NCBI GenBank assembly: GCA_946965045.2
Contig: OX337242.1
Span: 620,001-684,000 of the forward strand
Length of the DNA: 64,000 bases
Source of the DNA: Epithemia pelagica
Lineage: Eukaryota; Protista; Bacillariophyta
Direction of reading: 5' to 3'
Shown here: positions 13,667 to 27,653 of the stretch, one piece after another
Layout: each line of letters starts with the position of its first letter
How positions within the stretch are numbered: position 1 is the stretch's first letter
Made by a program: the position numbers and the translations under genes
Notes under the pieces: model-generated
What the model was told of the DNA's origin: nothing
Database searches by the model: none
Seen by the model: the letters and a program-made list of their open reading frames with translations, nothing else

Positions 13667-14680
13667 TTAGGATTCGGCCGCCTCGGTTGGTTCTTTTTCC
13701 ACTGTGGAGGTATACGGCGGTCCCAATTTGGAGGCTGCCGCCTCATCCAACATCCATGTCGCTCGGGCTCGCAATCCGACCGCCGGAAAGGACGTTAGCG
13801 TTTCCTTGGGATTGGCAATGGCTCGTTGCATACCGGCCGATTTGCCCTGCGGATACTTGTCCGACACCCCACAGGCCGCCACCACGACTTGCTTGGCATG
13901 GGCCATGACGGGCAAGGACAGGGTAATACTCGGTGGTGTTTTCATGTCCACCGACAAGACCCAGGGAATACTATCTTCGGAAGTTGCATCGGATCCCACC
14001 AAGACTTCGTCGCGATTGGGATACAAGGAACCGACATGACCATCGTCTCCGACGCCAATCAAGGCCAAATCAAACAGGGGCAATCCCGTTGCGGTGCGTG
14101 GCAAAATGTCGGTCGACACGGCTTGCAATTTGGTGTGATACGAGGCGGCTTCGGCCGGTCCATTGTCGGTTCCATCTAGTAAAATCGTGGTGCAATCCTT
14201 CCAGTCGTGCAAAAACAAACTAGTGGCCTTGGCATGCGTCGCTTGGACGGCATCGTCCATGGCGACACACTTGTGATTGACATAGGCCAAGGTCGTGTGC
14301 GTCGTCCAATCCGCATCGTCATTGCCCCCCGTACCGACCAACATTTTCAAAATGGATCCCCCGGGAATGGCCAGGGCAAAGTGACCCCGGTCTTTCAGGG
14401 CTTGACGAGCCGCGGTACGAACCACGTCCCGGACGGCGGCCCCCACATCCTCGGCCGTCGCATACAGTTGCACCGCGTCCACCGGAGCCGGTGGCGTTGT
14501 CATTTCGGCCGTGGTCGAATCGGTACCGGCTTCTTGGAGCAGAACGCTTCTTGTGCCACGGCGGGCAAAACGACCCACACCACCACTCAGGGCAAAGGCA
14601 CTCACTCCTCCTGTGCTCGTGGTGGATGTGGTGATTGATACGTAGATCCAGGCGAGTAGGAATCCAAACAAGCTTGTCAT
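13667..14680 (-). CDS. PGL: 6-phosphogluconolactonase, predicted plastid-targeted
   Basis: Motifs FALAIPGGS, DLALIGVGDDGHVGSLYP and ITLSLPV. Presequence MTSLFGFLLAWIYVS...VSA-FAL is ASAFAP-like, starting at ATG 14680. Confidence 0.9.
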   Translation of the reverse strand: MTSLFGFLLAWIYVSITTSTTSTGGVSAFALSGGVGRFARRGTRSVLLQEAGTDSTTAEMTTPPAPVDAVQLYATAEDVGAAVRDVVRTAARQALKDRGHFALAIPGGSILKMLVGTGGNDDADWTTHTTLAYVNHKCVAMDDAVQATHAKATSLFLHDWKDCTTILLDGTDNGPAEAASYHTKLQAVSTDILPRTATGLPLFDLALIGVGDDGHVGSLYPNRDEVLVGSDATSEDSIPWVLSVDMKTPPSITLSLPVMAHAKQVVVAACGVSDKYPQGKSAGMQRAIANPKETLTSFPAVGLRARATWMLDEAAASKLGPPYTSTVEKEPTEAAES

Positions 14681-15175
14681 GGTTGCAACACCAACCAAAG
14701 GAGTATACGTTGAAGAAAGATTCGACTGCTAGTGACGTGTACAACGGAGCGTGAGTAAAATATGTGTACATCAAAATATATAGTAAAAGAAAGAGAGACG
14801 CGCGGTTGTTTCAAAGAGTCCCACCGAGCTCCAAGACCGTTGGGGAAATGACTCGTCCGGTCCCAACAGGACTTCTTGGGGCTCGACCGCTCACAAAACC
14901 CTGAAAAAGAACCTGTGAGGCTTTGTCTCTCGTTGTAGACACTTTTTGCCACAAACCGACCAAACCAAAGAAGTCTTGGCAGGTCAAATCCTCCATTTTG
15001 TATCTCTTTTCTGTGTGTGTCGTCTTGGACTCAGGTGGATTGATTTTGGATGGAGTAGACTCTTTCTACCAACCAAAGAGGAGAGAGACAGAGAAAGAAG
15101 GACAAGTTCTCACAAACAGAAGAAGGCGAAGAATCCAGGGAACTCCTTTGTGCTCTTGTTGTTCTCGTAGATTGA

Positions 15176-18100
15176 TTGGATACCCTACGAGACAAGACAA
15201 TGAACGAATCCGCGTCGGCCAACATTGCGCTGGTCGCCAGTCCTACAAGCAACAACACTGCGTCGACCACCACGACACCAAAGGAGGATGCCACACACAA
15301 CAACGACAAAGATGCGACCCCGGCAATCCTCATGGATCCCGTCAAACCCGTTCTCCCAAAGGAGGAGCCAGAGGATCCGACAACCCTCAAGGCTACAGTG
15401 TCTCCCGAGACGAAGGATGCAGAGACCACGGACGTGAACCAACAACCACCACAACAAGAACAACAACAAGAACAACAAGCAACACCATCTGCTCCGCCAC
15501 AGGAGAGCCTCTCATCCTCGTCGGTTCCGACAACGGTTGACGAATCCCAACAGGAAACGGCAGTGGTGGCTTTATCGGTCAATGGAGAAGGAGCAACAAC
15601 TGCATCAGCAATAGCAGAACACCAACAAGACGAGACCAAGGCCTCGTCGTCGTCCTCCTCCTTGGAGGGAGCATCCACAACCACCACCACCACAACCACG
15701 GAACCGTTACTTACGGCGGCCGCATCTACAGACAGCGATGCCACGACCATGGCACAAGCACAAGCACAAGCACAAGCACAAGCACAAGCACAAGCACAAG
15801 CACAAGCACAAGCACAAGAACAATCGCAAGAACAACAAGAACAACATTCAGAACCGGACAACAACAACACTCAGACTACAACAACTACTTCTGCAACATC
15901 GACCACAGAGCCAGAGGCACAACCACCACAGAATGACTCGACCAACCAACAACCACCGCCACTACCATCAACCACAACACCGGCAGCAACGACCGATGCC
16001 GTCGAGGAGACTGCCAATCTGGACAGCAAGGACGACGTAGAAACTGTTCAGAAATCCTCCACAATCCAGGACGATGCAGTGGAGGAGGCAGCACCTGTGG
16101 CAACGACCGATGCAGTCGAGGAGTCTCCCAATCTGGACAACAAGGACGACGAAGAAACTGTTCCGGAATCCTCCACAATACAGGACGATGCAGTGGAGGA
16201 GGCAGTACCTGCAGCAACGACCGATGTTGTTGAAGAGACTTCCAATCTCAACAACAAGGACGACGCAGAAACTGTTCCGGAATCTCCAGTTCAGAACCAA
16301 ACAGCGGAGGAGGAAACACCTGCAGCAATGACCGATGCAGTCAAGGAGTCTCCTAATCTGGACAACAAGGACGACGCGGACATGGCTCAGGAATCCTCCA
16401 CAATCCAGAACCAAGCAGTGGGGGAGGAAGCACCTGCAGCAACGACCAATGTTGTTGAGGAGACTTCCAATCTGGATAAGGACGACGCTGAAATTGTTCA
16501 GGAGCCTCCAGTTCAGAACCAAGCAGTGGAGGAGGAAACACCTGCAGCACCGACGGATGATGTTGAGGAGACTCCCAGTCTGGATAAGGACGACGCAGAA
16601 ATTGTACAGGAGCCTCCAGTTCAGAACGAAGCAGTGGAGGAGGAAACACCTGCAGCAATGACCGATGCAGTCGAGCAGACTTCCAATCTGGATAAGGACG
16701 ACGCACAAATTGTTCAGGAATCCTCAACAATCCAGGACGATGCAGCGGAGGAGGAAGCACCTGCAGCAACGACCGATGTAGTCGAGCAGACTCCGAGTCT
16801 GGATAAGGACGACGCAGAGATTGCACAGGAATCCTCAACAATCCAGGACGATTCAGTGAAGGAGGAAGCTCCTGCAGCAACGACCGATGTCGTCGAGGAG
16901 ACTCCCAGTGTATCGAAAGAGGAGAACGCGGACATGGTTCAGGAATCCTCAACCCAGGACCAAACAGTCGAGGAGGACACACCGGCGGCAACGACCGATG
17001 CAGTCGAGGAGACTGTCTGTCTTGACAAGGACACGGAAGATGCACAAGAAGCCCAGGAAATTGTGTCAAACACGAATGAGGAGAACGAGGCTTTCACAAC
17101 TCAAGAACCGGTCGAAGAAGGCCACAATGTCTCGAACCCACCAATCGAAACCGATACAAACCAGGATGCTACAGACGATACTCTGGTGGCCGAGACACCA
17201 GACTCTCTTGTTGAGAACAAGACAGTCAACACGAAAGAAGAGTCTCCTACCATGAGTGATGCGCAAGAGGAGGAAACGACAGCCATCTCACCAACTGCTG
17301 CCGAGAGTGCGGAGGAGCCAGTGGCGCCCTCAACCGAAACACAACTCGCTTCGAATCAGAATGACTCAGAGCAATCGACCACGCAAGAGGCTACAGGAAT
17401 TTCTGGCGATCCACAAGCGACGGTTGAGGAATCCAATGGTATGGATGATTCACCTTCCGACATGGATTCACCCGAAACTGCTACAGAAGAAGCATTGAAT
17501 GGAGACGGTTCTCAACCTGCCTCTTCATCGGATGCTCTTCCAGAGCCAAACGCTCAAGAAGAAAGCGCGAACGAAACATCCCAGTCTCCTGGCGGAGCTT
17601 CGGACGCTGCCAAGGAGGACCCCACACCAGAGGACCAAGTACTCCCTAAACCTGTCGAAGAGGAAACTGCAGGTAAAGACACACCTCTTGCCGAGAGTGA
17701 TGTCCAAGCAACAAATAAAGTGGACCATGCCATCGCGCCCACAGATACTGCAACGACCACTTCGAGCCAGGAACCAGTCGATCAAACGGACGAGGGTGAC
17801 GGTTGTGTGGACCATAATGAACCCATTGCGGTCGAAATAACTACATCGAATGAGACGGAAGGGTCTGTCTCAAAGACCGTAGACACTGGGGTACAAAACC
17901 AAGAGTCAGTAGAAGAGTCCACAGTGGGGGAGGTACCAAAATCGGATGAAACCGAGCCGGAGAAAGGCGAAACTCTGTCCAACACAGAGGCACAAGAAGT
18001 CGACGGGTTAACAACGGATACTCAAGGGGAAAGTCCGAGTGCAACAAAGCATCCAAGCTCTACCGCTGATAACGATACCAAGACCGAAACTACAGACACA

Positions 18101-21100
18101 TTGTCAAGAGACGAATCAAATGACGACAGCTCTCTGCTTGATGCTCCCTCCAGTGAACAAGAAGCCACGACGGATTCTGCATCTACTACAGCTGATCAAG
18201 CAGTTCAGCAGGAAGCGAATGATGCAGAATTGGTGGATTCGAATGCCGTCACAATGCAAAACAATGAAGTATGTGAATCGACGGATAAGGACGAGAACGA
18301 AATCAATGTGTCCAAGGAAGACTGTATTGACAGCAAGAAAGATTCTCTGTCAATGCTTCAGAACACCGAAAAGACTGGGACTGGCGAAGAAATCGAACTG
18401 CCAGCACCAGTCCCCGATGTGGTCTGTTCACCTGCCATAGCCGCAGAAGCATCATCCAGTCAAGAGCCCACTCCAACTCAAGAAGTCATGAGAAATAGCA
18501 TGGAAGCAGTAGGAGATACAACAAGTGAACCTAAAAGTTCGTCGGACGAAGTCGATCGCTCAACCGTTGAGAATACAGCGCCGTCGGAACCAGCACAAGA
18601 TGTGATGCAATCGAGCAGTGAACCCGTTTCACCAAGTGAAACGCCCGCGGAAGCATCAAAAGATGACGAAGGATCTTCTGAGGCAAACAATGATACGATT
18701 GCAGTTGCAGAACCCCTGTCGAGTCAACCATCAGCAGAGAGCACCACCGAAGGTTCTGAAGCGACCTCAAACAAAAAATCCGGAGTTTCAGACACGATCA
18801 AAACAATAGATGATTCTCAAGTGACAACCGAGGACACTCAAGAGACCCCGACCACCGCGGATGGTCTCCTTGTGCTTTTGTCTTTGCAGTCCTTTGATCG
18901 TGAGGTTGTCGCGAACCAACAGATGACAACGACAGTGTTAGACAACAACGGGGTTAAATATGACACACTTGACGGAGCAAACGCTGACAATCGAACGAGG
19001 AGAAACGAGCTCTTTGGTATCTCCGGTATTCGAGCCAAATACCCACAATTCTTCCTTGTCAAAGGCAACAGTACTACTTACTGGGGGGACTGGGAGAAAT
19101 TCCAGATGGCAAATGATTCGCGAACCATTGTCGATGAGTTTATGAAACCATTCGAAAAATCATCTCCAACAACCAGTGATGCAGAACCAACAGCAGATAG
19201 AGCGATCCCAGATGAGCAAGGTGCACTTATTGAAGACACCTCATCACTAGAAATTGCGGAGAAACACCTTCTTATACTCATGTCATTACGCTCTTTTGAT
19301 CGCGACGTGGTATCCAATCAGAAACAAACGATTGCAGCCCTGGACGGAAATGGAGTTAAATACAAAATCGTGGATGGCGCTGACCCTGACAACCGACCAA
19401 AGAGAAACGAGCTCTTTGAGCTTTCGGGGATAAGAGCAAAATATCCGCAATTCTTCACTGTCGAGAGTGACAAGACCACAAAATTCTGGGGAGACTGGGA
19501 AAAGTTTCAGATGGCGAATGAGAACGGAGCCATAAGCGACATTCTGAATAGGCTTGGAACTGGGGATATGTCTCAGCGTGACGACGGTGTTTCAAAGACT
19601 TCAGTGCCCACGGCAGGAACAGCAGTTGTGGCGGATTTGTCCGCAGTCGAAATTGAAGGGAGACATCTTTTGGTTTTGGTTTCACTGCAGTCGTTCGATC
19701 GCAAGGTGGTTGCGAACCAACAACAGGTTATTTCAGTGCTCAACGCAAATAAGGTTACCTACAAAACCTTGGATGGTGCAAATCAGGAATTCAAAACAAG
19801 AAGAAACGAGCTATTTGAGATCTCTGGTATCCGAGCGAAATATCCACAGTTCTTTACGATTGAGAACGATAGAACGACCTTTTGGGGTGACTTTGAAAAG
19901 TTCCAGCTTACCAATGATAGCGGTAAGATTGTTGAAGAATTCAGTGAACCTGCCGCAGTTCAGTCCACGGCTCCAGATACACAGCCGAAGCCGAGCGAGG
20001 AACCACAAGATGAATCTGAAGCACCATCTTCAGTTGTAGTAGACAGTTCATCATTGGAGCTTGAGGGACGTCACCTTCTCGTTCTCATTTCGTTGCAGTC
20101 TTTCGATCGCGAAGTGGTTGCAAACCAACAACAAGTCATATCAGTATTGGACGCCAACAGTATCAAATACAAAACACTGGATGGAGCCAACCAGGACTAC
20201 ATAGCACGAAGAAATGAGCTCTTTGAGACATCTGGTATTCGTGCCAAGTATCCGCAGTTCTTTATGGTGGAAAGCGATAAATCGACCACATTTTGGGGCG
20301 ATTTTGAAAAGTTCCAGATAACTAACGACAGGGGCGACATTGTCAACGAATTCAGCGAGCCCCTTCCTGTAGAGTCATCCCCGCCATCAACGCAGTCGAC
20401 CGAGCAGCCACAACAGGAGCCGGAAGAACCTACTGCGATTGTCGACAGCTCATCGTTGGAAATTGAGGGACGTCACCTTCTCGTTCTTATTTCGTTGCAG
20501 TCTTTCGATCGTGAGGTGGTTGCGAACCAGCAACAGGTCATATCAGCATTGGATGCCAACAGTATCAAGTATAAAACACTGGATGGAGCCAACCAGGACT
20601 ACAAAGCACGAAGAAATGAGCTCTTTGAGATATCTGGTATCCGAGCCAAGTATCCGCAGTTCTTTATGGTGGAAAGCGATAAATCGACCACATTCTGGGG
20701 CGATTTTGAAAAGTTCCAGATTACCAATGATAGCGGCGACATGGTCAAAGAATTCAGCAAGCCCCTTCCCGTAGAGTCATCCCCGCCATCAACGCAGTCG
20801 ACCGAGCAGCCACAACAGGAGTCGGAAGCACCTACTGCGATTGTCGATAGCTCATCGTTGGAAATTGAAGGACGTCACCTTCTCGTTCTCATTTCACTAC
20901 AATCATTCGACCGAGAAGTTGTTGCGAATCAACAACAGGTGATATCAGTATTGGACGCCAACAGTGTCAAATATAAAACACTGGATGGTGCAAACCAAGA
21001 CTTCAAAGCAAGGCGAAACGAGCTTTTTGAGATCTCTGGTATCCGTGCCAAGTATCCGCAGTTCTTTATGGTGGAAAGCGATAAATCGACCACATTCTGG

Positions 21101-23563
21101 GGCAATTTTGAAAAGTTCCAGATAACTAACGACAGGGGCAACATTGTGGAAGAGTTCAGTCCGGGTATCACGACATCCGAACCCCCACCAACGAGCAACG
21201 ACAATGAAGAGAGTCTCTCTGTGTTCAAGGCCACTGGTGCATTGGTTGAGGAAGAGATTGTGTTCATTCCGGACACTTCTGCTGTAGAAATAAGTGGCAA
21301 GCATCTTCTGGTTCTGGTCTCACTGCAATCATTTGACCGGGAGGTGGTTGCGAACCAGCAACGAACCATTGAGGTTTTGGATTCGAGCGGGGTCAAATAT
21401 AAAACATTGGATGGGGCGAACCCAGACTACGTCGCGAGAAGAAATGAACTGTTCGACATATCCGGTATACGGGCCAAGTACCCTCAGTTTTTCATTGTCG
21501 AAGATGATAAGACAACAAGGTTTTGGGGTGACTGGGAAAAATTCCAGAGCAATGACATTTCCGTCGTACTCTCGCAAGAGTCGGATGAGGAGACTCCATC
21601 TCCCACCGAGTCCTTGGATAAGGAGCCTACTCCAGCTGATCCTGTACCCTCCGAAGCTACCGAACCGGAGACTCAAGTGGACACTCCTGTCGCTGAAGAG
21701 GCGACGTCAAGCAGGGAAGAAGAAGCTCCCGTTTCCGCCGATGAGAGTCCATCAGAAGCAAACGCACCTTCGTCTGATGATATTTCTGGTGAAAGCAATA
21801 TGGAATTGCCGGTGAAACAGAGCAATACACCCACATCGACAGAGAACACAGAAACCACGGATGCAAGCAGCACGGCCCAAGAGTCTTTGGCAATCTCCAG
21901 TGACATTCAAACACCGGAAGAGAAGGTGTCTGTTCAGGCAGAGTCGAAACCTCTAAATGACGATTCCACTTCAGATCCACAAGAGGCAAGTTCTCCTGAG
22001 ACGTTGCCTGATACACCCTCCACTGCCACTACCGATATGGCTGCCAACAACCCACCCCAAGCATCGGCTCCAACCGTGGCAGACCCAACGACAGAAGTTG
22101 TTGAACCGATTCCGGACGCATCCATGGAAGCAGAATCAGCGACGCCGGTGCAAGTCTCGAAGGAAAAGACTCCCGAACCAGTAGATTCTACACCCGTGGA
22201 ACCTGCACCAAAAGTCGAGTCCACCGAAGCTACTGTGGCTGTTGTTGCTCCGCCAGCTGCTGATGGAGAGGAGGCCTCCTCCACGACCACGCCTCCATCC
22301 TCGCAGGATAATGTCGACGAAGACGACAACAACAAGGGAACCTCCGTCTCGTTGATAGAAGTGGAGGTTGTGGAATCCTCCGAAACCGACATTGTCACCG
22401 AACGGGTAGTGGAACCCCTGGTTGACACGAATCTCGATGTCATTGTCGAAGAGTCGGAGAGTCCACCAGACGAGAGTGAATCCCCTGGTGAATCCTCCCA
22501 GCCCCTCGTGGTTGCACCCAAAGAGGACGTCACACCACCACCCGTGACACCTTCTCCTCCTCCTCCTCCTTCCACCGTGCCCTCCACCAAGACGGCTCCT
22601 GTTGCTCCAGCACCTCCACCAGCGCCAGTTGTGATAACGACCCGAATTCAGGACTCGGCGTCCAAGGTGATCCAGGGGCGACATTTGGTTGTGTTGGTGT
22701 CGTGTCAACCGACTGATGTGACCATGGCCACTCGTCAAGAGGAAACAATCAATCTCCTGGATGCGCATGGCATTCAATACAAGACGATTGATGGATCCAA
22801 TCCGGCCAACAATTCCCAAAAGAATGAACTCTTTTTTTCCTGCGGAGTTCGTGCTACCTCCAAGTACCCGCAAGTGTTCAAACTTCGAAGCGACAAGAGC
22901 GCCTCCTATTGGGGCGATTGGGAGACACTGGACAAACTCCAAAAGCAAGGTGACCAACCAGTGGCAGAGGAATTTGCCTCCTACATTGACGCCTCCCGAA
23001 TCCCCGAGAAAAAGGCCGCTCCACCACCACCGGCGACCAGCAGCAGCAGCACCACTACCATTCCGACCAAGGGAACACATGTCTTGGTGTTGATTTCCAG
23101 TCAATCGACGGACCGCGAGGTCCAGGCCAATCAAATGTTGAGTGTGGCAGTCCTCCAGGCCAAATCACTGAATCATGTCACCTTGGATGGATCAGACCCG
23201 GCGAATAAAACGCGGGCCAATGAACTCGTGTTCTTGTCCGGCAGTCGTCCCCACTATCCCCTCTTTTTCCTGTTAAAAAATGGCAAGGCTGACTTTTGGG
23301 GTGGATGGGACAAATTTCGCAAGGTGAATCAAAGCAATGGTATTGCGCAAGAATTTCGACGGGCCAGCTCCAAGGAAACCTTGGAAGCCGAAGATGCTCC
23401 CACGCACAATAGCAACAACAACAACCACCACAAGGTCCGGGCCAATCGCCGAGCCTCTCTGGCGGCCGCACCCCTTCCACTCAAATCACCCACCAAAAAA
23501 TCGGCCAATGATCGCATTGCCTTGACCACCGATGTGTGGCGAAGCATGAATTGTCCCTTGTAA
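15176..23563 (+). CDS. Giant 2795-aa acidic protein with nine SH3BGR-like thioredoxin-fold domains
   Basis: Single uninterrupted ORF. Nine copies of L(V/I)L.S.QS.DREV.ANQQ....LD.N.(I/V)KY..LDG......RNELF..SG.R.KYPQFF......(F/Y)WGD(W/F)EKF, which aligns by eye with SH3BGRL3 (SREIKSQQSEVTRILD..PPQI..YCGDYELF). Long E/D/T/S/P-rich spacers. Confidence 0.85.
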   Translation: MDTLRDKTMNESASANIALVASPTSNNTASTTTTPKEDATHNNDKDATPAILMDPVKPVLPKEEPEDPTTLKATVSPETKDAETTDVNQQPPQQEQQQEQQATPSAPPQESLSSSSVPTTVDESQQETAVVALSVNGEGATTASAIAEHQQDETKASSSSSSLEGASTTTTTTTTEPLLTAAASTDSDATTMAQAQAQAQAQAQAQAQAQAQAQEQSQEQQEQHSEPDNNNTQTTTTTSATSTTEPEAQPPQNDSTNQQPPPLPSTTTPAATTDAVEETANLDSKDDVETVQKSSTIQDDAVEEAAPVATTDAVEESPNLDNKDDEETVPESSTIQDDAVEEAVPAATTDVVEETSNLNNKDDAETVPESPVQNQTAEEETPAAMTDAVKESPNLDNKDDADMAQESSTIQNQAVGEEAPAATTNVVEETSNLDKDDAEIVQEPPVQNQAVEEETPAAPTDDVEETPSLDKDDAEIVQEPPVQNEAVEEETPAAMTDAVEQTSNLDKDDAQIVQESSTIQDDAAEEEAPAATTDVVEQTPSLDKDDAEIAQESSTIQDDSVKEEAPAATTDVVEETPSVSKEENADMVQESSTQDQTVEEDTPAATTDAVEETVCLDKDTEDAQEAQEIVSNTNEENEAFTTQEPVEEGHNVSNPPIETDTNQDATDDTLVAETPDSLVENKTVNTKEESPTMSDAQEEETTAISPTAAESAEEPVAPSTETQLASNQNDSEQSTTQEATGISGDPQATVEESNGMDDSPSDMDSPETATEEALNGDGSQPASSSDALPEPNAQEESANETSQSPGGASDAAKEDPTPEDQVLPKPVEEETAGKDTPLAESDVQATNKVDHAIAPTDTATTTSSQEPVDQTDEGDGCVDHNEPIAVEITTSNETEGSVSKTVDTGVQNQESVEESTVGEVPKSDETEPEKGETLSNTEAQEVDGLTTDTQGESPSATKHPSSTADNDTKTETTDTLSRDESNDDSSLLDAPSSEQEATTDSASTTADQAVQQEANDAELVDSNAVTMQNNEVCESTDKDENEINVSKEDCIDSKKDSLSMLQNTEKTGTGEEIELPAPVPDVVCSPAIAAEASSSQEPTPTQEVMRNSMEAVGDTTSEPKSSSDEVDRSTVENTAPSEPAQDVMQSSSEPVSPSETPAEASKDDEGSSEANNDTIAVAEPLSSQPSAESTTEGSEATSNKKSGVSDTIKTIDDSQVTTEDTQETPTTADGLLVLLSLQSFDREVVANQQMTTTVLDNNGVKYDTLDGANADNRTRRNELFGISGIRAKYPQFFLVKGNSTTYWGDWEKFQMANDSRTIVDEFMKPFEKSSPTTSDAEPTADRAIPDEQGALIEDTSSLEIAEKHLLILMSLRSFDRDVVSNQKQTIAALDGNGVKYKIVDGADPDNRPKRNELFELSGIRAKYPQFFTVESDKTTKFWGDWEKFQMANENGAISDILNRLGTGDMSQRDDGVSKTSVPTAGTAVVADLSAVEIEGRHLLVLVSLQSFDRKVVANQQQVISVLNANKVTYKTLDGANQEFKTRRNELFEISGIRAKYPQFFTIENDRTTFWGDFEKFQLTNDSGKIVEEFSEPAAVQSTAPDTQPKPSEEPQDESEAPSSVVVDSSSLELEGRHLLVLISLQSFDREVVANQQQVISVLDANSIKYKTLDGANQDYIARRNELFETSGIRAKYPQFFMVESDKSTTFWGDFEKFQITNDRGDIVNEFSEPLPVESSPPSTQSTEQPQQEPEEPTAIVDSSSLEIEGRHLLVLISLQSFDREVVANQQQVISALDANSIKYKTLDGANQDYKARRNELFEISGIRAKYPQFFMVESDKSTTFWGDFEKFQITNDSGDMVKEFSKPLPVESSPPSTQSTEQPQQESEAPTAIVDSSSLEIEGRHLLVLISLQSFDREVVANQQQVISVLDANSVKYKTLDGANQDFKARRNELFEISGIRAKYPQFFMVESDKSTTFWGNFEKFQITNDRGNIVEEFSPGITTSEPPPTSNDNEESLSVFKATGALVEEEIVFIPDTSAVEISGKHLLVLVSLQSFDREVVANQQRTIEVLDSSGVKYKTLDGANPDYVARRNELFDISGIRAKYPQFFIVEDDKTTRFWGDWEKFQSNDISVVLSQESDEETPSPTESLDKEPTPADPVPSEATEPETQVDTPVAEEATSSREEEAPVSADESPSEANAPSSDDISGESNMELPVKQSNTPTSTENTETTDASSTAQESLAISSDIQTPEEKVSVQAESKPLNDDSTSDPQEASSPETLPDTPSTATTDMAANNPPQASAPTVADPTTEVVEPIPDASMEAESATPVQVSKEKTPEPVDSTPVEPAPKVESTEATVAVVAPPAADGEEASSTTTPPSSQDNVDEDDNNKGTSVSLIEVEVVESSETDIVTERVVEPLVDTNLDVIVEESESPPDESESPGESSQPLVVAPKEDVTPPPVTPSPPPPPSTVPSTKTAPVAPAPPPAPVVITTRIQDSASKVIQGRHLVVLVSCQPTDVTMATRQEETINLLDAHGIQYKTIDGSNPANNSQKNELFFSCGVRATSKYPQVFKLRSDKSASYWGDWETLDKLQKQGDQPVAEEFASYIDASRIPEKKAAPPPPATSSSSTTTIPTKGTHVLVLISSQSTDREVQANQMLSVAVLQAKSLNHVTLDGSDPANKTRANELVFLSGSRPHYPLFFLLKNGKADFWGGWDKFRKVNQSNGIAQEFRRASSKETLEAEDAPTHNSNNNNHHKVRANRRASLAAAPLPLKSPTKKSANDRIALTTDVWRSMNCPL
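15751..15816 (+). repeat. (GCACAA)n microsatellite encoding a poly-AQ tract
   Basis: About 11 tandem GCACAA units in frame within the giant ORF. Confidence 0.9.
15980..17035 (+). repeat. Coding tandem repeat, about 10 units of 36-38 aa
   Basis: Units of the form PAATTD(A/V)VEET..LD.KDDA..VQE....Q..AVEEE(A/T) repeated consecutively. Confidence 0.9.
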
Positions 23564-24941
23564 AATGATGGAACCACACAAGATCTGTTTCTCTCTTTCT
23601 CTCTAGAAACTATGTACTCTAGTAAATGGCACAGCCAGTTCCCTCTAGTCGTATCGATAGCCATGGAAACGATCCCATTTGGCTTCCATGGACCTATATA
23701 CTACTAGTGACAGTTATTCTAGATACAAAGGTCTTACCAACACATTTGCACACAGAGAGGGATGAATGATGGAGGGTGAGTTTCTCTCGTTTTACTCTCT
23801 CTGGTTTGTCCTACACCGCATTCCGTTCGAGGTGTGATCCCTGTGGGAGAGTGTCTGCCTCGTGCAGTTCATTTCTGCACCACCCAGAGCAACGTTTTTG
23901 GCATGGAAACCATGCACTCCACCGTCTCTCTCTCTCTCTCAACAAGCGTCGATTGCATCCTGCATCATTGGAACAACATTGGAACGAAACACATGGAGGC
24001 GAACGATAGCATGGAGAATCTCCGTAGTGTGGTAGGATTGTCTGCGATCCCACGATTCCACAACAACCACAATGATTGTCTGTGGTCACGATTCCTCAAC
24101 AGCAACAACAACAACATGTATTCGCGCAACTCGGGATCCTATTAGAATATACTATTATCACGAATAGATCACACAACTCCCGAATACGCCTCCGTGATTC
24201 CTACGAGCTCGTACTCTCGTAGTCAACTACGAGTAAGAGGAGGATGAGGATGGTACTATATATAGTTGTTGTTGCATTCGTTTGTCTCATTTTTTTCTGT
24301 TTCCAATGACAAACTCCAAAACAAAAGGGAGGACAAGCCCCGTGCGTTTGGGGCTTGATCGTGAATGACTTCTTGTTAAATGAGTACTTGCTCCCAGAAC
24401 GATTGTATGAAACGTAGTACACTGGAATGGTTGAATTCGTGACAGACGAAAGGGACTGAATTGTACTTTTGAATCTATAGTCAAACGTTACTGTACATCA
24501 TAAAGTAGTATCGGATACTTTTTGGATGATACCAGGACAATCGTGGTCCCTGCACGTATCTATTCCCCAACTAAACATCTGCATGTGTGGCCTCTCCACG
24601 ACGTCAAACATTCAACGGAGCCCTGCTATTCTTGTGTGTGGAGATAACTGGTTGGTCCGAGAGAAAAGTGGTAATAAAATTGTCCTTCATTCCCTCTTCG
24701 CTCTCTCTCGAGACGAGACCTTTTGTGTGTGTGTGTGGACTTTGGTCAACTCTCTCTCTCTCCGTTCGAGATTGTGAGAGTGTGTCATATTCCTGGCTCT
24801 CCTTGTTGTGGTTGCCCAACAGCGCCCTCCTTGTTGTTGTTGCCGGTCGTAGGAGCATTGGAGCGTGGATTGCAGCATCTCTTGCCCATTCTCTCGCGGT
24901 TTTCCTAGTATTAGTATTATTACTCTGTAACAATCGAGAGT

Positions 24942-27653
24942 ATGGAACCCTTGGTGCTCAAGAGTGGCAATACTCGTCCACCCGCCATGGCAGGTACTGG
25001 TGGTGAAGCATGGAATCCCGCGGCCGCCTTGGATTGTCCCACCACTCCCAGTACCACCACCAAAAGCAAGGCCAAACACAGCAATCACAAAAGCAACAAC
25101 AACAAGCAGCAGTCCTCCAATCTCAAATCTCCACCCCCCTCGTCCGCGAGTCGACGACGACGATCCTTGTCGCGACTCGTCATGCCTGAAAAAGAGGAAG
25201 AATTGGTGGGAGAAAAAACAACGGCCACGACCAGTTCGAGCAGTTTGGAAGACCTCCAACCACCACAGCCATCCGACCCTTCTACTCGCCACAACAGTAC
25301 CAAGAAACGATCGTCTTCCAAATCGGCGCGAGGACGACGACGGAGTAGTTTGGGGACTCCCGTTCTCAAATCCAAACCACAATCACAGTCGCAACAGTCG
25401 CAACAAGCACAAGCACAACCACAGTCCTCCCTGCATCATTCGTGGCAAGGTTCCGAACTCCTTCACCGCAACGACGACAACAATGAAGAAGAAGAAGAAG
25501 ATTGGAAACATTCGCATCGCAGCAATCGCACGACCCAATCGTCCAAAACGCCCACGACACCCACCACGACCGCCACCACCTTGACCTTGTCGCCCTTGCC
25601 CGCCACGACAACCTCCTCGCCACGGTCCAAAAAGACGTCGTCGTCCCGCAAAAAATCAAGTGGCAAATCCAATGAACTCGAGACCCCCAAATCCTCCGCC
25701 AAAGTCAAATCGTCCAAGAAAAAATCCACCAAATCACGATCCAAATCCAAGACGCGACGGCCTCCCTTGGCACCCTCCTTGGAACAAGCCGCACCCGCCG
25801 AAAGCAGTAATAGTGGCCATGGCCGACCCAAATTAGTCGACCCAGACGAAGCACAACAACAAGATTTGGAAGGATCCTTGATCTTGGACCATGCTCCCGA
25901 AGACGATCCAGAACAAAAGTCTACGAGCAAGCGACGGTCTCGATCCTCTTCGAAACTACGCACTAAGAAAGCACTCAAGAAACAATCGAGCAAACGCAAT
26001 TTTCACGATTCCATGCGATCCAAAAAGTCGTCGTCCTCCGTGTCGTCGTCTCTCAAGAAGGACAAGAACAAGGACCAGGAAGAAAACCACCAAGCACCAG
26101 AAGCCGAAGAATTACCGGAAACGGATCGCGAATGGATTGCCAAGACCCGGTCTCGATCCCGATCGCACGAGGCCAAGAGATCCTCCAAACAAGAAACTCG
26201 TGGTCGTGGTCGAAGACGATCGCTGTCGCGATCCCGAAGCAAAAAGAATCTCACCAACAAAAAGTCGTCACTGAAAAAGACCACGTCTTCCTCCTCTCTG
26301 CCACAAGAACAAGAACAACCAGAACAACCACCACCACTACCACAAGACGATCAAGATTGGGTGGCGGCTCGATTGGAAGAAACCCGACAACGTGTCGATG
26401 CCGAAGACACTCCCAAGGCAGCGGCGGCTCTGTCCAAACGCAAAAAGAAGAATAAGGACCAACCCGAACAAGAACCACCAGAACCAGCTCCCAAGCCGGC
26501 ACCACCACAACCCGAAGAGTCCTTGGACCTTTCGGTACCACCCTCCTTTGTCGGTGTCACGATTGAATTTGATCCAGCCGACGAAGATTGTTCCGTCATT
26601 ACCACACCTCGGCAAATTCGGGAAGACGACGATTATCATCCGTCCCGATCCCGTACGTCCTCCACGACCCAATCGTCCAGTATCCATCAAAATAACAAGC
26701 GTGGATTGGAACCGGAAGGATTGCACAATTCCGAACGCATGCATCGGACGGTATTCCTACCGGGATTTCAAACGGGATTGCCCGCCAGTCCAGCGCAACG
26801 TGGAGGATCGCGATGGAGGAATTTGCAATCGGTCCCCGAACAAACCACGGAAGAAGAGGGGGACCAACCGCCGTCGTCACGGTCACCAGAGTCGAAGGAA
26901 CAACCACAACCACAACAACAAGACATCGATCCTCATCACCCGCACCCAGAGAACAACACCAACAAGTCGGGAGAAAAGCCGTGGCCACCGGCCGTGGCGG
27001 CCGCCAAGGAATTGATTCAGCAACGCAAGCAGCAACAACAACAACAACAGTCAAGGCCGCCACCACCACTGCCATCGCAAGAACAACAACAAGTACGGGA
27101 AACTCCCTTGGTAGAAACCGTCACCTCGGACGACTCGGACCATTCCTCCCCCGCGTTGAAGGACGAAGCCAACCCGACGAGCAGCACTGGCAGCAACAAC
27201 AACAACAAGGCCTCTCGCACCAACCACACCAAGACGAGCCGCAGTTGTTTGGTCGTGTTGGTATTGGTGTCGAATCAAAGTTTGAATCGCACCGTGGTGG
27301 CAAATCAAGAGCGAGCCATTACCATTTTGGACAGTCTCAACCGGGTGCATGAAGATACCATTGCCTACCGATTGCTCGATGGGTCCGATCCCACCAATCG
27401 CGAAAAACGCAATCAATTGCAACGACTCGTGGCCGACTCGCCGTCCACAACAAGTACGGCTGCTGGCATGGAGTATCCCCAATTCTTTACCTGTCATGTT
27501 CATCATGAAGAATTGGATTCCATTTCGCAACAGGGCCGACATTGGGAATTGGTCACAATCGATCGGACCGAGCTGCTCTCGTACAAGGGCAATTGGGATT
27601 GGTTGGAACAGTTGCATGAAACGGGACAATTGAAAAAGGCGCTCATGCAATAA
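24942..27653 (+). CDS. 903-aa Lys/Arg/Ser-rich low-complexity protein with one C-terminal SH3BGR-like domain
   Basis: C-terminus LVLVSNQSLNRTVVANQERAITILD...LDGSDPTNREKRNQL...YPQFF...YKGNWDWLEQL is homologous to the repeats of the upstream giant protein. Confidence 0.8.
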   Translation: MEPLVLKSGNTRPPAMAGTGGEAWNPAAALDCPTTPSTTTKSKAKHSNHKSNNNKQQSSNLKSPPPSSASRRRRSLSRLVMPEKEEELVGEKTTATTSSSSLEDLQPPQPSDPSTRHNSTKKRSSSKSARGRRRSSLGTPVLKSKPQSQSQQSQQAQAQPQSSLHHSWQGSELLHRNDDNNEEEEEDWKHSHRSNRTTQSSKTPTTPTTTATTLTLSPLPATTTSSPRSKKTSSSRKKSSGKSNELETPKSSAKVKSSKKKSTKSRSKSKTRRPPLAPSLEQAAPAESSNSGHGRPKLVDPDEAQQQDLEGSLILDHAPEDDPEQKSTSKRRSRSSSKLRTKKALKKQSSKRNFHDSMRSKKSSSSVSSSLKKDKNKDQEENHQAPEAEELPETDREWIAKTRSRSRSHEAKRSSKQETRGRGRRRSLSRSRSKKNLTNKKSSLKKTTSSSSLPQEQEQPEQPPPLPQDDQDWVAARLEETRQRVDAEDTPKAAAALSKRKKKNKDQPEQEPPEPAPKPAPPQPEESLDLSVPPSFVGVTIEFDPADEDCSVITTPRQIREDDDYHPSRSRTSSTTQSSSIHQNNKRGLEPEGLHNSERMHRTVFLPGFQTGLPASPAQRGGSRWRNLQSVPEQTTEEEGDQPPSSRSPESKEQPQPQQQDIDPHHPHPENNTNKSGEKPWPPAVAAAKELIQQRKQQQQQQQSRPPPPLPSQEQQQVRETPLVETVTSDDSDHSSPALKDEANPTSSTGSNNNNKASRTNHTKTSRSCLVVLVLVSNQSLNRTVVANQERAITILDSLNRVHEDTIAYRLLDGSDPTNREKRNQLQRLVADSPSTTSTAAGMEYPQFFTCHVHHEELDSISQQGRHWELVTIDRTELLSYKGNWDWLEQLHETGQLKKALMQ

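Follow-up and report, generated by a model that had tools for sequence, protein, structure and literature searches.

The closest described relatives of the protein reported here are the animal SH3BGR and SH3BGRL1-3 proteins, which have a glutaredoxin-type fold that lacks the CxxC motif and are single-domain proteins of 10-20 kDa (PMC12827327). SH3BGRL, SH3BGRL2 and SH3BGRL3 attach between the two final protomers at the actin filament's pointed end, block the addition of subunits, and nucleate filaments weakly by stabilizing actin dimers and trimers (PMC12827327). The family has been renamed TPECs, for thioredoxin-fold pointed-end capping proteins, and yeast Aip5 acts alike and caps pointed ends (PMC12827327). 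Aip5 consists of a long disordered N-terminus followed by a cysteine-less glutaredoxin-like domain (Protein Data Bank, PDB, entries 6abr and 6m4c); it is reported to promote nucleation, and its disordered part to drive condensation (PMC6838200; PMC12827327). We analysed a 64,000-nucleotide (nt) stretch of the diatom Epithemia pelagica (assembly GCA_946965045.2, contig OX337242.1, positions 620,001 to 684,000 of the forward strand; the window), and describe a gene in it that encodes a giant protein of ~300 kDa with nine domains of this type. To our knowledge, the thioredoxin fold was recognized as an actin pointed-end capping or nucleating module only in 2025-2026, and only in small animal proteins and Aip5.

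Positions 15176-23563 of the forward strand are one open reading frame (ORF), 2795 codons long. Its first ATG is at 15200, with an in-frame stop just 5' of it, and the product has 2787 amino acids (aa). A regular-expression scan and two profile scans agreed on exactly nine modules of ~96 aa between 18857 and 23374 (Table 1). From the N- to the C-terminus, the protein comprises a polyanionic region of 1215 aa, seven tandem domains, a spacer of ~360 aa, two further domains and a tail of 16 aa. The whole protein matched the Pfam family SH3BGR (PF04908) at 145.6 bits (E 5e-43), and eight of the nine domains scanned singly exceeded the gathering score of 21 bits (range 21.6-32.3). Domain 9 reached 14.7 bits (E 0.036) against PF04908 and 106.9 bits against the subfamily profile, and it aligns throughout with the other domains. 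All domains are near neutral, with a net charge of -7 to +4 each. We regard this anatomy, a polyanionic disordered region followed by seven plus two redox-dead SH3BGR/TPEC-type modules on linkers and a tail, as virtually certain.

None of the nine domains contains a CxxC or CxxS motif, and CxxC is found nowhere in the protein, which has 8 Cys in total. In the giant protein, the loop corresponding to the glutaredoxin active site has the sequence S-L-Q-S-F-D-R, and the loop Cys is absent across 129 family members, except for one C at the position of a conserved Ser. No match to Pfam Glutaredoxin (PF00462) was obtained on the protein at E ≤ 0.01. We considered a redox role for the two Cys of domain 8 and rejected it, since the ortholog does not keep them. 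A genuine multi-glutaredoxin, with a redox or glutathione-dependent function, would agree with the glutaredoxin-type fold and with the weak matches of a few relatives to Pfam Glutaredoxin, but the missing motifs in all nine domains, the loss of the loop Cys across the family and the lack of conservation of the Cys pair in domain 8 bring this explanation close to refuted, and we consider it extremely unlikely. Pfam matches to DUF2314, DUF4434 and NQRA_2nd were below their cut-offs and fell inside the SH3BGR domains, and were judged to be due to chance.

A reading made earlier from the sequence only had placed nine SH3BGR-like domains without CxxC at about 18860-23360, behind ~1200 aa of acidic disordered sequence, in a protein with neither signal peptide nor introns. 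The scans described above, the composition of the N-terminal region (1215 aa, net charge -243), the hydropathy of the N-terminus and the continuity of the frame agreed with this reading on every one of these points, as did the model of the fold.

We modelled domain 4 with AlphaFold 2 (AF2) from 129 aligned family domains. The resulting model had a mean predicted local distance difference test score (pLDDT) of 89.9 and a predicted template modelling score (pTM) of 0.79, with the order β-α-β-α-β-β-α of a glutaredoxin-type fold. A Foldseek search of the PDB with this model returned SH3BGRL2 (2ct6), SH3BGRL3 (1t1v), SH3BGRL (1wry), SH3BGRL3 (1sj6) and SH3BGRL (1u6t) at ranks 1-5, followed at ranks 6-8 by yeast Aip5 (6abr), SH3BGRL3 (1j0f) and chain Z of 8iah, representing SH3BGRL2 as bound within the junctional complex of spectrin and actin. 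Template modelling (TM) scores were 0.69-0.79 for ranks 1-5 and 7, all of them SH3BGRL1-3, and the fold of Aip5 was matched at E 2.5e-4 (TM 0.63-0.69), without a sequence match to Aip5 at E ≤ 1. True glutaredoxins, protein disulfide isomerase domains and calsequestrin ranked below SH3BGRL and Aip5. By sequence, a profile of the nine domains matched SH3BGRL3 in the PDB at E 2e-5, and the animal proteins are the best matches of the diatom domain in both sequence and structure. In a model of domains 4 and 5 together (55-row alignment; pTM 0.48), the domains had a pLDDT of ~95 and the 30-residue linker a pLDDT below 50; with ordered domains and a low-confidence linker, the array most resembles stiff beads along a flexible string.

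Its profile match, its fold and its lack of the redox motif place the giant protein in the SH3BGR family, but with nine domains it fails the description of that family as small single-domain proteins. It also differs from the animal SH3BGRL proteins in lacking their PLPPQIF-type SH3/Homer-EVH1 motif; the equivalent segment reads K-Y-P-Q-F-F, with a single Pro in the cis-Pro loop. The PLPPQIF-type motif is considered to be buried and probably non-functional (PMC12827327). The architecture is analogous to that of Aip5 in that a long disordered N-terminus lies ahead of glutaredoxin-like sequence, though Aip5 has one C-terminal domain and the giant protein nine.

Contact zone 1 of SH3BGRL on actin consists of the β1-α1 loop and the β2-α2 turn, residues 9-15 and 41 (PMC12827327). 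In an HMMER alignment to SH3BGRL3 this zone corresponds, in the diatom domain, to positions 12-18 and 44, which carry or adjoin the near-invariant residues S12, Q14/S15/R18 and D42-G43. The most conserved motifs of the subfamily are L-S-x-Q-S-x-x-R and D-G; the conserved loops of the diatom domain coincide with the actin-contact zone 1 of SH3BGRL. By analogy, we propose that the giant protein may be a multivalent cytosolic scaffold linked to actin, with a capping, nucleating or clustering role. Each module would use the vestigial active-site face of its thioredoxin fold as a non-enzymatic binding site, and the nine copies would provide avidity. Actin would be the most likely target, because animal SH3BGRL and yeast Aip5 bind the pointed end and stabilize small actin oligomers, and the giant protein could then work on many filament ends, through nucleation, capping or clustering. 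The polyanionic region would serve as a spacer or help to form condensates, like the disordered part of Aip5, and the basic patch and conserved tail at the C-terminus may be a docking or lipidation site. We favour this account tentatively, and put it somewhat short of an even chance. A comparable logic, several weak actin-binding units on flexible linkers near proline-rich tracts, is found in Spire, Cobl and VopL/VopF, which carry repeated WH2 units; their unit is a 17-aa helix, as opposed to a 96-aa thioredoxin fold, and the likeness, which draws in part on the discussion in PMC12827327, is one of design, with no homology.

A word search identified two full-length counterparts of the giant protein. 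P0001, from another assembly, has 2740 aa, is 89% identical and has nine domains arranged 7+2. P0002, of 2990 aa, shares 60% identity over the domain half, and its seven domains form a 5+2 arrangement. Both adjoin the same divergent PF01182 gene that precedes the window gene, and are therefore positional orthologs. All 25 indels relative to P0001 keep the frame (25/25), and one of them is exactly one 37-aa repeat unit. The ratio of nonsynonymous to synonymous substitution rates (dN/dS) against P0001 was 0.14 for the nine domains, 0.52 for the N-terminal region and 0.45 for the linkers; the domains are, judging by these rates, under purifying selection. In BLASTP comparisons with P0002 the N-terminus gave no match (E 49), with acidic composition and charge kept, and the long linker gave a marginal match only (E 0.007); no conserved short motif turned up between the disordered regions of the two proteins. 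The P0001 locus is flanked by Copia-type retrotransposon genes (RVT_2, gag_pre-integrs) at L023:1-2736 and 17012-20223.

In a tree of the domains, each window domain pairs with its P0001 counterpart, and window domain 9 pairs with domain 7 of P0002 (support 100/99). Window domains 3-6 form one clade, apart from a clade of P0002 domains 1-4, and two domain units of P0002 are identical to each other. The two C-terminal domains are, according to this tree, old, and the 402-nt tandem repeat is by all appearances a recent duplication of the domain-plus-linker units 4-6. The separate clades, the 90% identity of the 402-nt repeat and the identical units of P0002 together indicate that the middle of the array was amplified independently, or homogenized, in each lineage.

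The divergent gene upstream leaves a promoter region of ~500 nt and no room for a hidden 5' exon. We then mapped contigs of four sequencing runs, none of them on record as RNA, on positions 19000-24990, which comprise the domain half of the gene and the region downstream. Three of the runs behaved like DNA, and covered the gene and the intergenic DNA alike. Run X3 (39 million letters; longest contig 19.6 kb) covered 19000-23631 continuously over 4.6 kb, at a word depth of 500-2300, and its coverage stopped at 23631 with a sequencing-adapter loose end. Depth in X3 was ~0 over 23800-24800 and came back near 24800, just before the next gene. This pattern of genic depth and near-absent intergenic depth resembles that of an RNA library, and argues for transcription of at least the domain half. 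We infer that the 3' end of the transcript lies ~70 nt past the stop codon. No splice-like joint was seen in the X3 contigs over 19000-23631.

A stretch of 206 nt in the Pro-rich linker (22345 to 22552) is skipped by contigs of three runs, which include both DNA-like and RNA-like ones. We rejected an intron here, given the GT..CC ends, a length that is not a multiple of three, a shorter side of 20 letters and the presence of the joint in DNA-like runs; its position in a Pro-rich low-complexity stretch also counts against an intron. The skip is probably a repeat-collapse or allelic artefact. The contigs of the runs differ from the window over 19000-24990 at many sites, reaching ~3% within a single 1-kb piece and including 3-nt indels that keep the frame, as could be expected if the sequenced material contained divergent haplotypes or strains.

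The region is rich in repeats, with tandem arrays of 111 nt and 402 nt, short-read contigs break within it, and one joint skips 206 nt; the giant frame could then be an artefact or decaying repeat, whether through a faulty join in the assembly, the reading of several genes as one, or an ORF without function. However, the same single ORF of 8-9 kb, with the same order of parts and the same synteny, is present in two other assemblies, the domains match one-to-one with signs of purifying selection, and all indels are in frame. In addition, the RNA-like coverage is unbroken over 4.6 kb, and the 206-nt skip is also seen in DNA-like runs. An artefact is therefore highly improbable, and we conclude that this is a real, expressed, intronless, nuclear diatom gene. 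The genome also holds at least 11 full silicon-transporter genes, which mark it as that of a diatom.

More than 1900 residues of the giant protein are disordered spacer. The N-terminal 1215 aa contain 23.6% D+E, 3.6% K+R, 24.5% Ser+Thr and 13% hydrophobic residues, and the net charge of the whole protein is -351. The linkers between domains 1-7 are ~35-40 aa long and rich in Pro, Ser, Glu and Gln. No segment resembling a signal peptide was found, the first 30 aa being hydrophilic (average Kyte-Doolittle value -0.55), and no membrane-spanning segment was detected, since the highest 19-residue window reached 1.31 and was located inside a domain. The strong acidity raised the question of a polyanion-centred function, in which the protein would buffer cations (Ca2+ or polyamines) in the cytosol or form a condensate or brush, with self-associating modules, in a manner loosely like calsequestrin. 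Calsequestrin is likewise a very acidic protein with several redox-inactive thioredoxin-fold domains, and these domains are among the fold matches of the model (E ~5e-4); moreover, the ortholog P0002 keeps the acidity though its sequence cannot be aligned there. Calsequestrin is, however, a luminal protein with a signal peptide and with its acidity in the domains, while the giant protein carries its charge in the spacers, has near-neutral domains, and has no hydrophobic N-terminus, signal peptide or endoplasmic reticulum retention signal. Selection is also strongest on the domains and not on the acidic parts, and calsequestrin ranks below all SH3BGRL and Aip5 matches. We therefore judge a polyanion-centred function to be improbable.

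The C-terminal tail RIALTTDVWRSMNCPL is common to the orthologs only among the relatives, and the remaining non-domain sequence of P0002 cannot be aligned. A search of this genome for a second copy of the tail matched only the gene itself. The tail has a Cys at -3, and is not a canonical CaaX box.

To place the array among its relatives, we made an exhaustive profile search of 1.84 billion representative proteins, which matched 843 proteins at E ≤ 1e-3, of which 404 reached E ≤ 1e-10. Domains were counted in 161 sequences of the list, which is ranked by total score and hence enriched for multi-copy proteins. One domain was present in 62 of these, two in 63, three in 25 and four in 8, and single proteins had five, seven and nine. 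Because the list was ranked by total score, any array larger than nine would have shown up, and nine is the largest SH3BGR-type array found in this search. More than five copies were seen only in the two positional orthologs (9 and 7). Tandem arrays are, by the same count, the rule in this mostly diatom subfamily, and those of 2-5 domains are common on disordered proteins; the median inter-domain linker is 25 aa, and none of the proteins counted has CxxC. The other members share the domain subtype (E down to 1e-184), usually in 2-5 copies on long disordered proteins, and do not have the C-terminal tail. The nearest ESM Atlas clusters were eukaryotic, the closest structural cluster being mostly Bacillariophyta (TM 0.89); small single-domain clusters were mostly Oomycota.

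In the literature searched, neither diatoms nor multi-domain arrays were linked to SH3BGR or PF04908 in any paper. The view of the sequence-only reading that a nine-domain array is undescribed thus holds, as nine was the maximum in the search and no linking paper was found. Its interpretation stood as to anatomy but not as to the implied isolation of the gene: at least five more genes with the subfamily domain are present in this genome, and the giant protein stands at the far end of a wide and undescribed expansion, mainly in diatoms, of SH3BGR-type proteins with several copies. Pfam SH3BGR is reached at E 1e-4 by no more than 40 of the 96 relatives scanned, and this weak visibility may explain why the subfamily went unnoticed.

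The same 96 relatives were scanned with Pfam for fusion partners. The subfamily domain was fused to Sacchrp_dh_NADP in 14, TIP41 in 6, GRIP in 4 and PI-PLC-X in 2, and to MFS, DUF676, Rpn13-Pru, Stealth and zf-MYND in single cases. In addition, P0006 (1673 aa), a myosin heavy chain with IQ motifs and a Myosin_head match at E 8e-166, carries the subfamily domain near its N-terminus, at residues 96-199 (E 2e-41 to the window-domain profile). No N-terminal domain of the P0006 type was detected by the search on the myosins encoded in this genome. Seven relatives (P0045, P0057, P0068, P0081, P0101, P0117 and P0126) end in a canonical CaaX box with an upstream Cys (for example C-x-C-V-I-L or C-x-C-I-I-M), which suggests that they are prenylated and palmitoylated, membrane-anchored cytosolic proteins. 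The great diversity of fusion partners, along with the CaaX boxes, points to a reusable docking module rather than an enzyme.

This diversity bears on an alternative to an actin-linked role, in which the domain is a generic adaptor or targeting unit with a partner other than actin (for instance a myosin, a membrane protein or some other abundant hub, or else a small ligand occupying the former glutaredoxin pocket), and the nine-copy protein a high-avidity hub or sponge. Fusion of the domain to very unlike proteins, including the myosin, the CaaX boxes of several relatives, and the location of the conserved residues on the canonical ligand face of the thioredoxin fold all agree with such an adaptor. 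Against it, the closest folds of known function are all actin pointed-end binders (PMC12827327), and no data of this analysis suggest another partner. We regard a generic adaptor as quite possible, if on balance doubtful.

Several observations bear on the actin-linked scaffold itself. The sequence-only reading had suggested a multivalent cytoplasmic scaffold, possibly cytoskeletal, and this suggestion gains indirect support, by analogy, from the SH3BGRL and Aip5 fold matches and from the myosin-fused relative; the presence of the domain in the myosin heavy chain P0006 counts for a link to actin, and the CaaX-ending relatives fit a cytosolic, membrane-proximal location. The genome has actin and formins (FH2). 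Four tandem actin genes lie at C10:2050991-2061243 with the same profile scores, and the copy that we read (L024:1489-2622) is an uninterrupted ORF of 377 aa. Profile searches of the genome for tropomodulin, ARPC2 and ARPC4 gave no match, an absence that is suggestive only. Diatoms have been reported to be without Arp2/3 and profilin (PMC11420354), a gap that an unconventional nucleator or capper would fill.

A number of points weigh against an actin-linked role. Sequence identity to SH3BGRL is only 18-25%, and the conserved loops make up the ligand face common to all thioredoxin folds, so that their conservation is not specific to actin. Most of the fusion partners are non-cytoskeletal (saccharopine dehydrogenase, TIP41, GRIP, PI-PLC-X, Rpn13, MFS). 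A filament has one site at its pointed end, and it is hard to see what nine sites would be for. The searches for tropomodulin and Arp2/3 ran without a positive control, the control genomes being prokaryotic and FH2 and actin serving as rough controls, and X3 is RNA-like by its behaviour and not by its record, with read mapping limited to 19000-24990. Complex prediction for domain 4 with two copies of the actin of this genome gave 0.28 and 0.30, compared with a mark of 0.34, and counts neither for nor against binding.

In diatoms, actin rings and bundles built with precision serve wall morphogenesis and gliding, and a lineage-wide multi-copy SH3BGR-type family is a concrete candidate for filament nucleation or capping in these organisms. 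If the modules bind actin, the arrays would be a new way to build a multivalent actin organizer. In the furthest-reaching form of the proposal, which is by itself unlikely, tandem SH3BGR/TPEC-type arrays would be an unrecognized class of actin nucleating or pointed-end clustering factors expanded in diatoms, and the nine-module protein a membrane-proximal organizer of many filament ends, for example in actin rings or bundles for the silica wall or gliding. If the modules do not bind actin, the subfamily still marks an unstudied and widely reused diatom docking module.

Table 1. Features of the giant SH3BGR-type gene, its neighbours and its paralogs. Positions are those of the window unless a contig (C) is named.
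Feature	Position	Strand	Evidence and remarks
Coding sequence of giant protein, 2787 aa + stop, intronless	15200..23563	+	Open frame; P0001 and P0002 also single-ORF
N-terminal polyanionic low-complexity region, aa 1-1215	15200..18844	+	Composition; no Pfam family
(GCACAA)14 microsatellite, giving an (AQ)n run	15752..15835	+	Tandem Repeats Finder; translation
111-nt (37-aa) acidic repeat, 9.3 tandem copies, 81% matches	15978..17014	+	Tandem Repeats Finder; within disordered region
SH3BGR-like domain 1	18857..19147	+	Pfam 32.3 bits; subfamily profile 131 bits
SH3BGR-like domain 2	19259..19546	+	Pfam 27.1 bits; subfamily profile 130.5 bits
SH3BGR-like domain 3	19655..19951	+	Pfam 26.9 bits; subfamily profile 129.3 bits
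SH3BGR-like domain 4, the modelled one	20063..20359	+	Pfam 29.9 bits; AF2; Foldseek
SH3BGR-like domain 5	20465..20761	+	Pfam 28.4 bits; subfamily profile 133.7 bits
SH3BGR-like domain 6	20867..21163	+	Pfam 25.5 bits; subfamily profile 131.6 bits
402-nt (134-aa) tandem repeat, 2.8 copies, 90% identical	20042..21159	+	Tandem Repeats Finder; covers domain-plus-linker units 4-6
SH3BGR-like domain 7	21293..21589	+	Pfam 21.6 bits; subfamily profile 124.4 bits
Long acidic proline-rich linker, domains 7-8, ~360 aa	21590..22675	+	Net charge -60, 16% Pro; poly-Pro tracts ~22535-22627
SH3BGR-like domain 8, divergent	22676..22954	+	Pfam 24.8 bits; subfamily profile 94.3 bits
SH3BGR-like domain 9, divergent	23069..23374	+	Pfam 14.7 bits (below cut-off); subfamily profile 106.9 bits
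Conserved C-terminal tail RIALTTDVWRSMNCPL, 16 aa, after basic patch	23513..23560	+	Identical in P0001 and P0002
3' untranslated end of transcript (approximate)	23564..23631	+	X3 depth drop and adapter loose end
6-phosphogluconolactonase / Glucosamine_iso type gene, divergent, upstream	13667..14698	-	ORF; PF01182 neighbour upstream of both orthologs too; synteny marker
Paralog, next gene downstream: 903 aa, basic Ser/Lys/Arg-rich, disordered	24942..27653	+	One divergent C-terminal domain
Paralog: three SH3BGR-like domains and C-terminal TIP41	C10:1247322-1251236		TIP41 E 1.8e-39
Paralog: 1363-aa ORF, two domains	C18
Paralog: short gene, two domains	C1
Paralog: 2807-aa ORF, one copy	C1

The paralog next to the giant gene has its domain at 27255-27647, with an insertion of ~30 aa (i-Evalue 2.4e-18) and no Pfam match. 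No copy of this neighbour was present within 6 kb of P0001. In the window, the giant protein and its 903-aa neighbour are opposite in charge.

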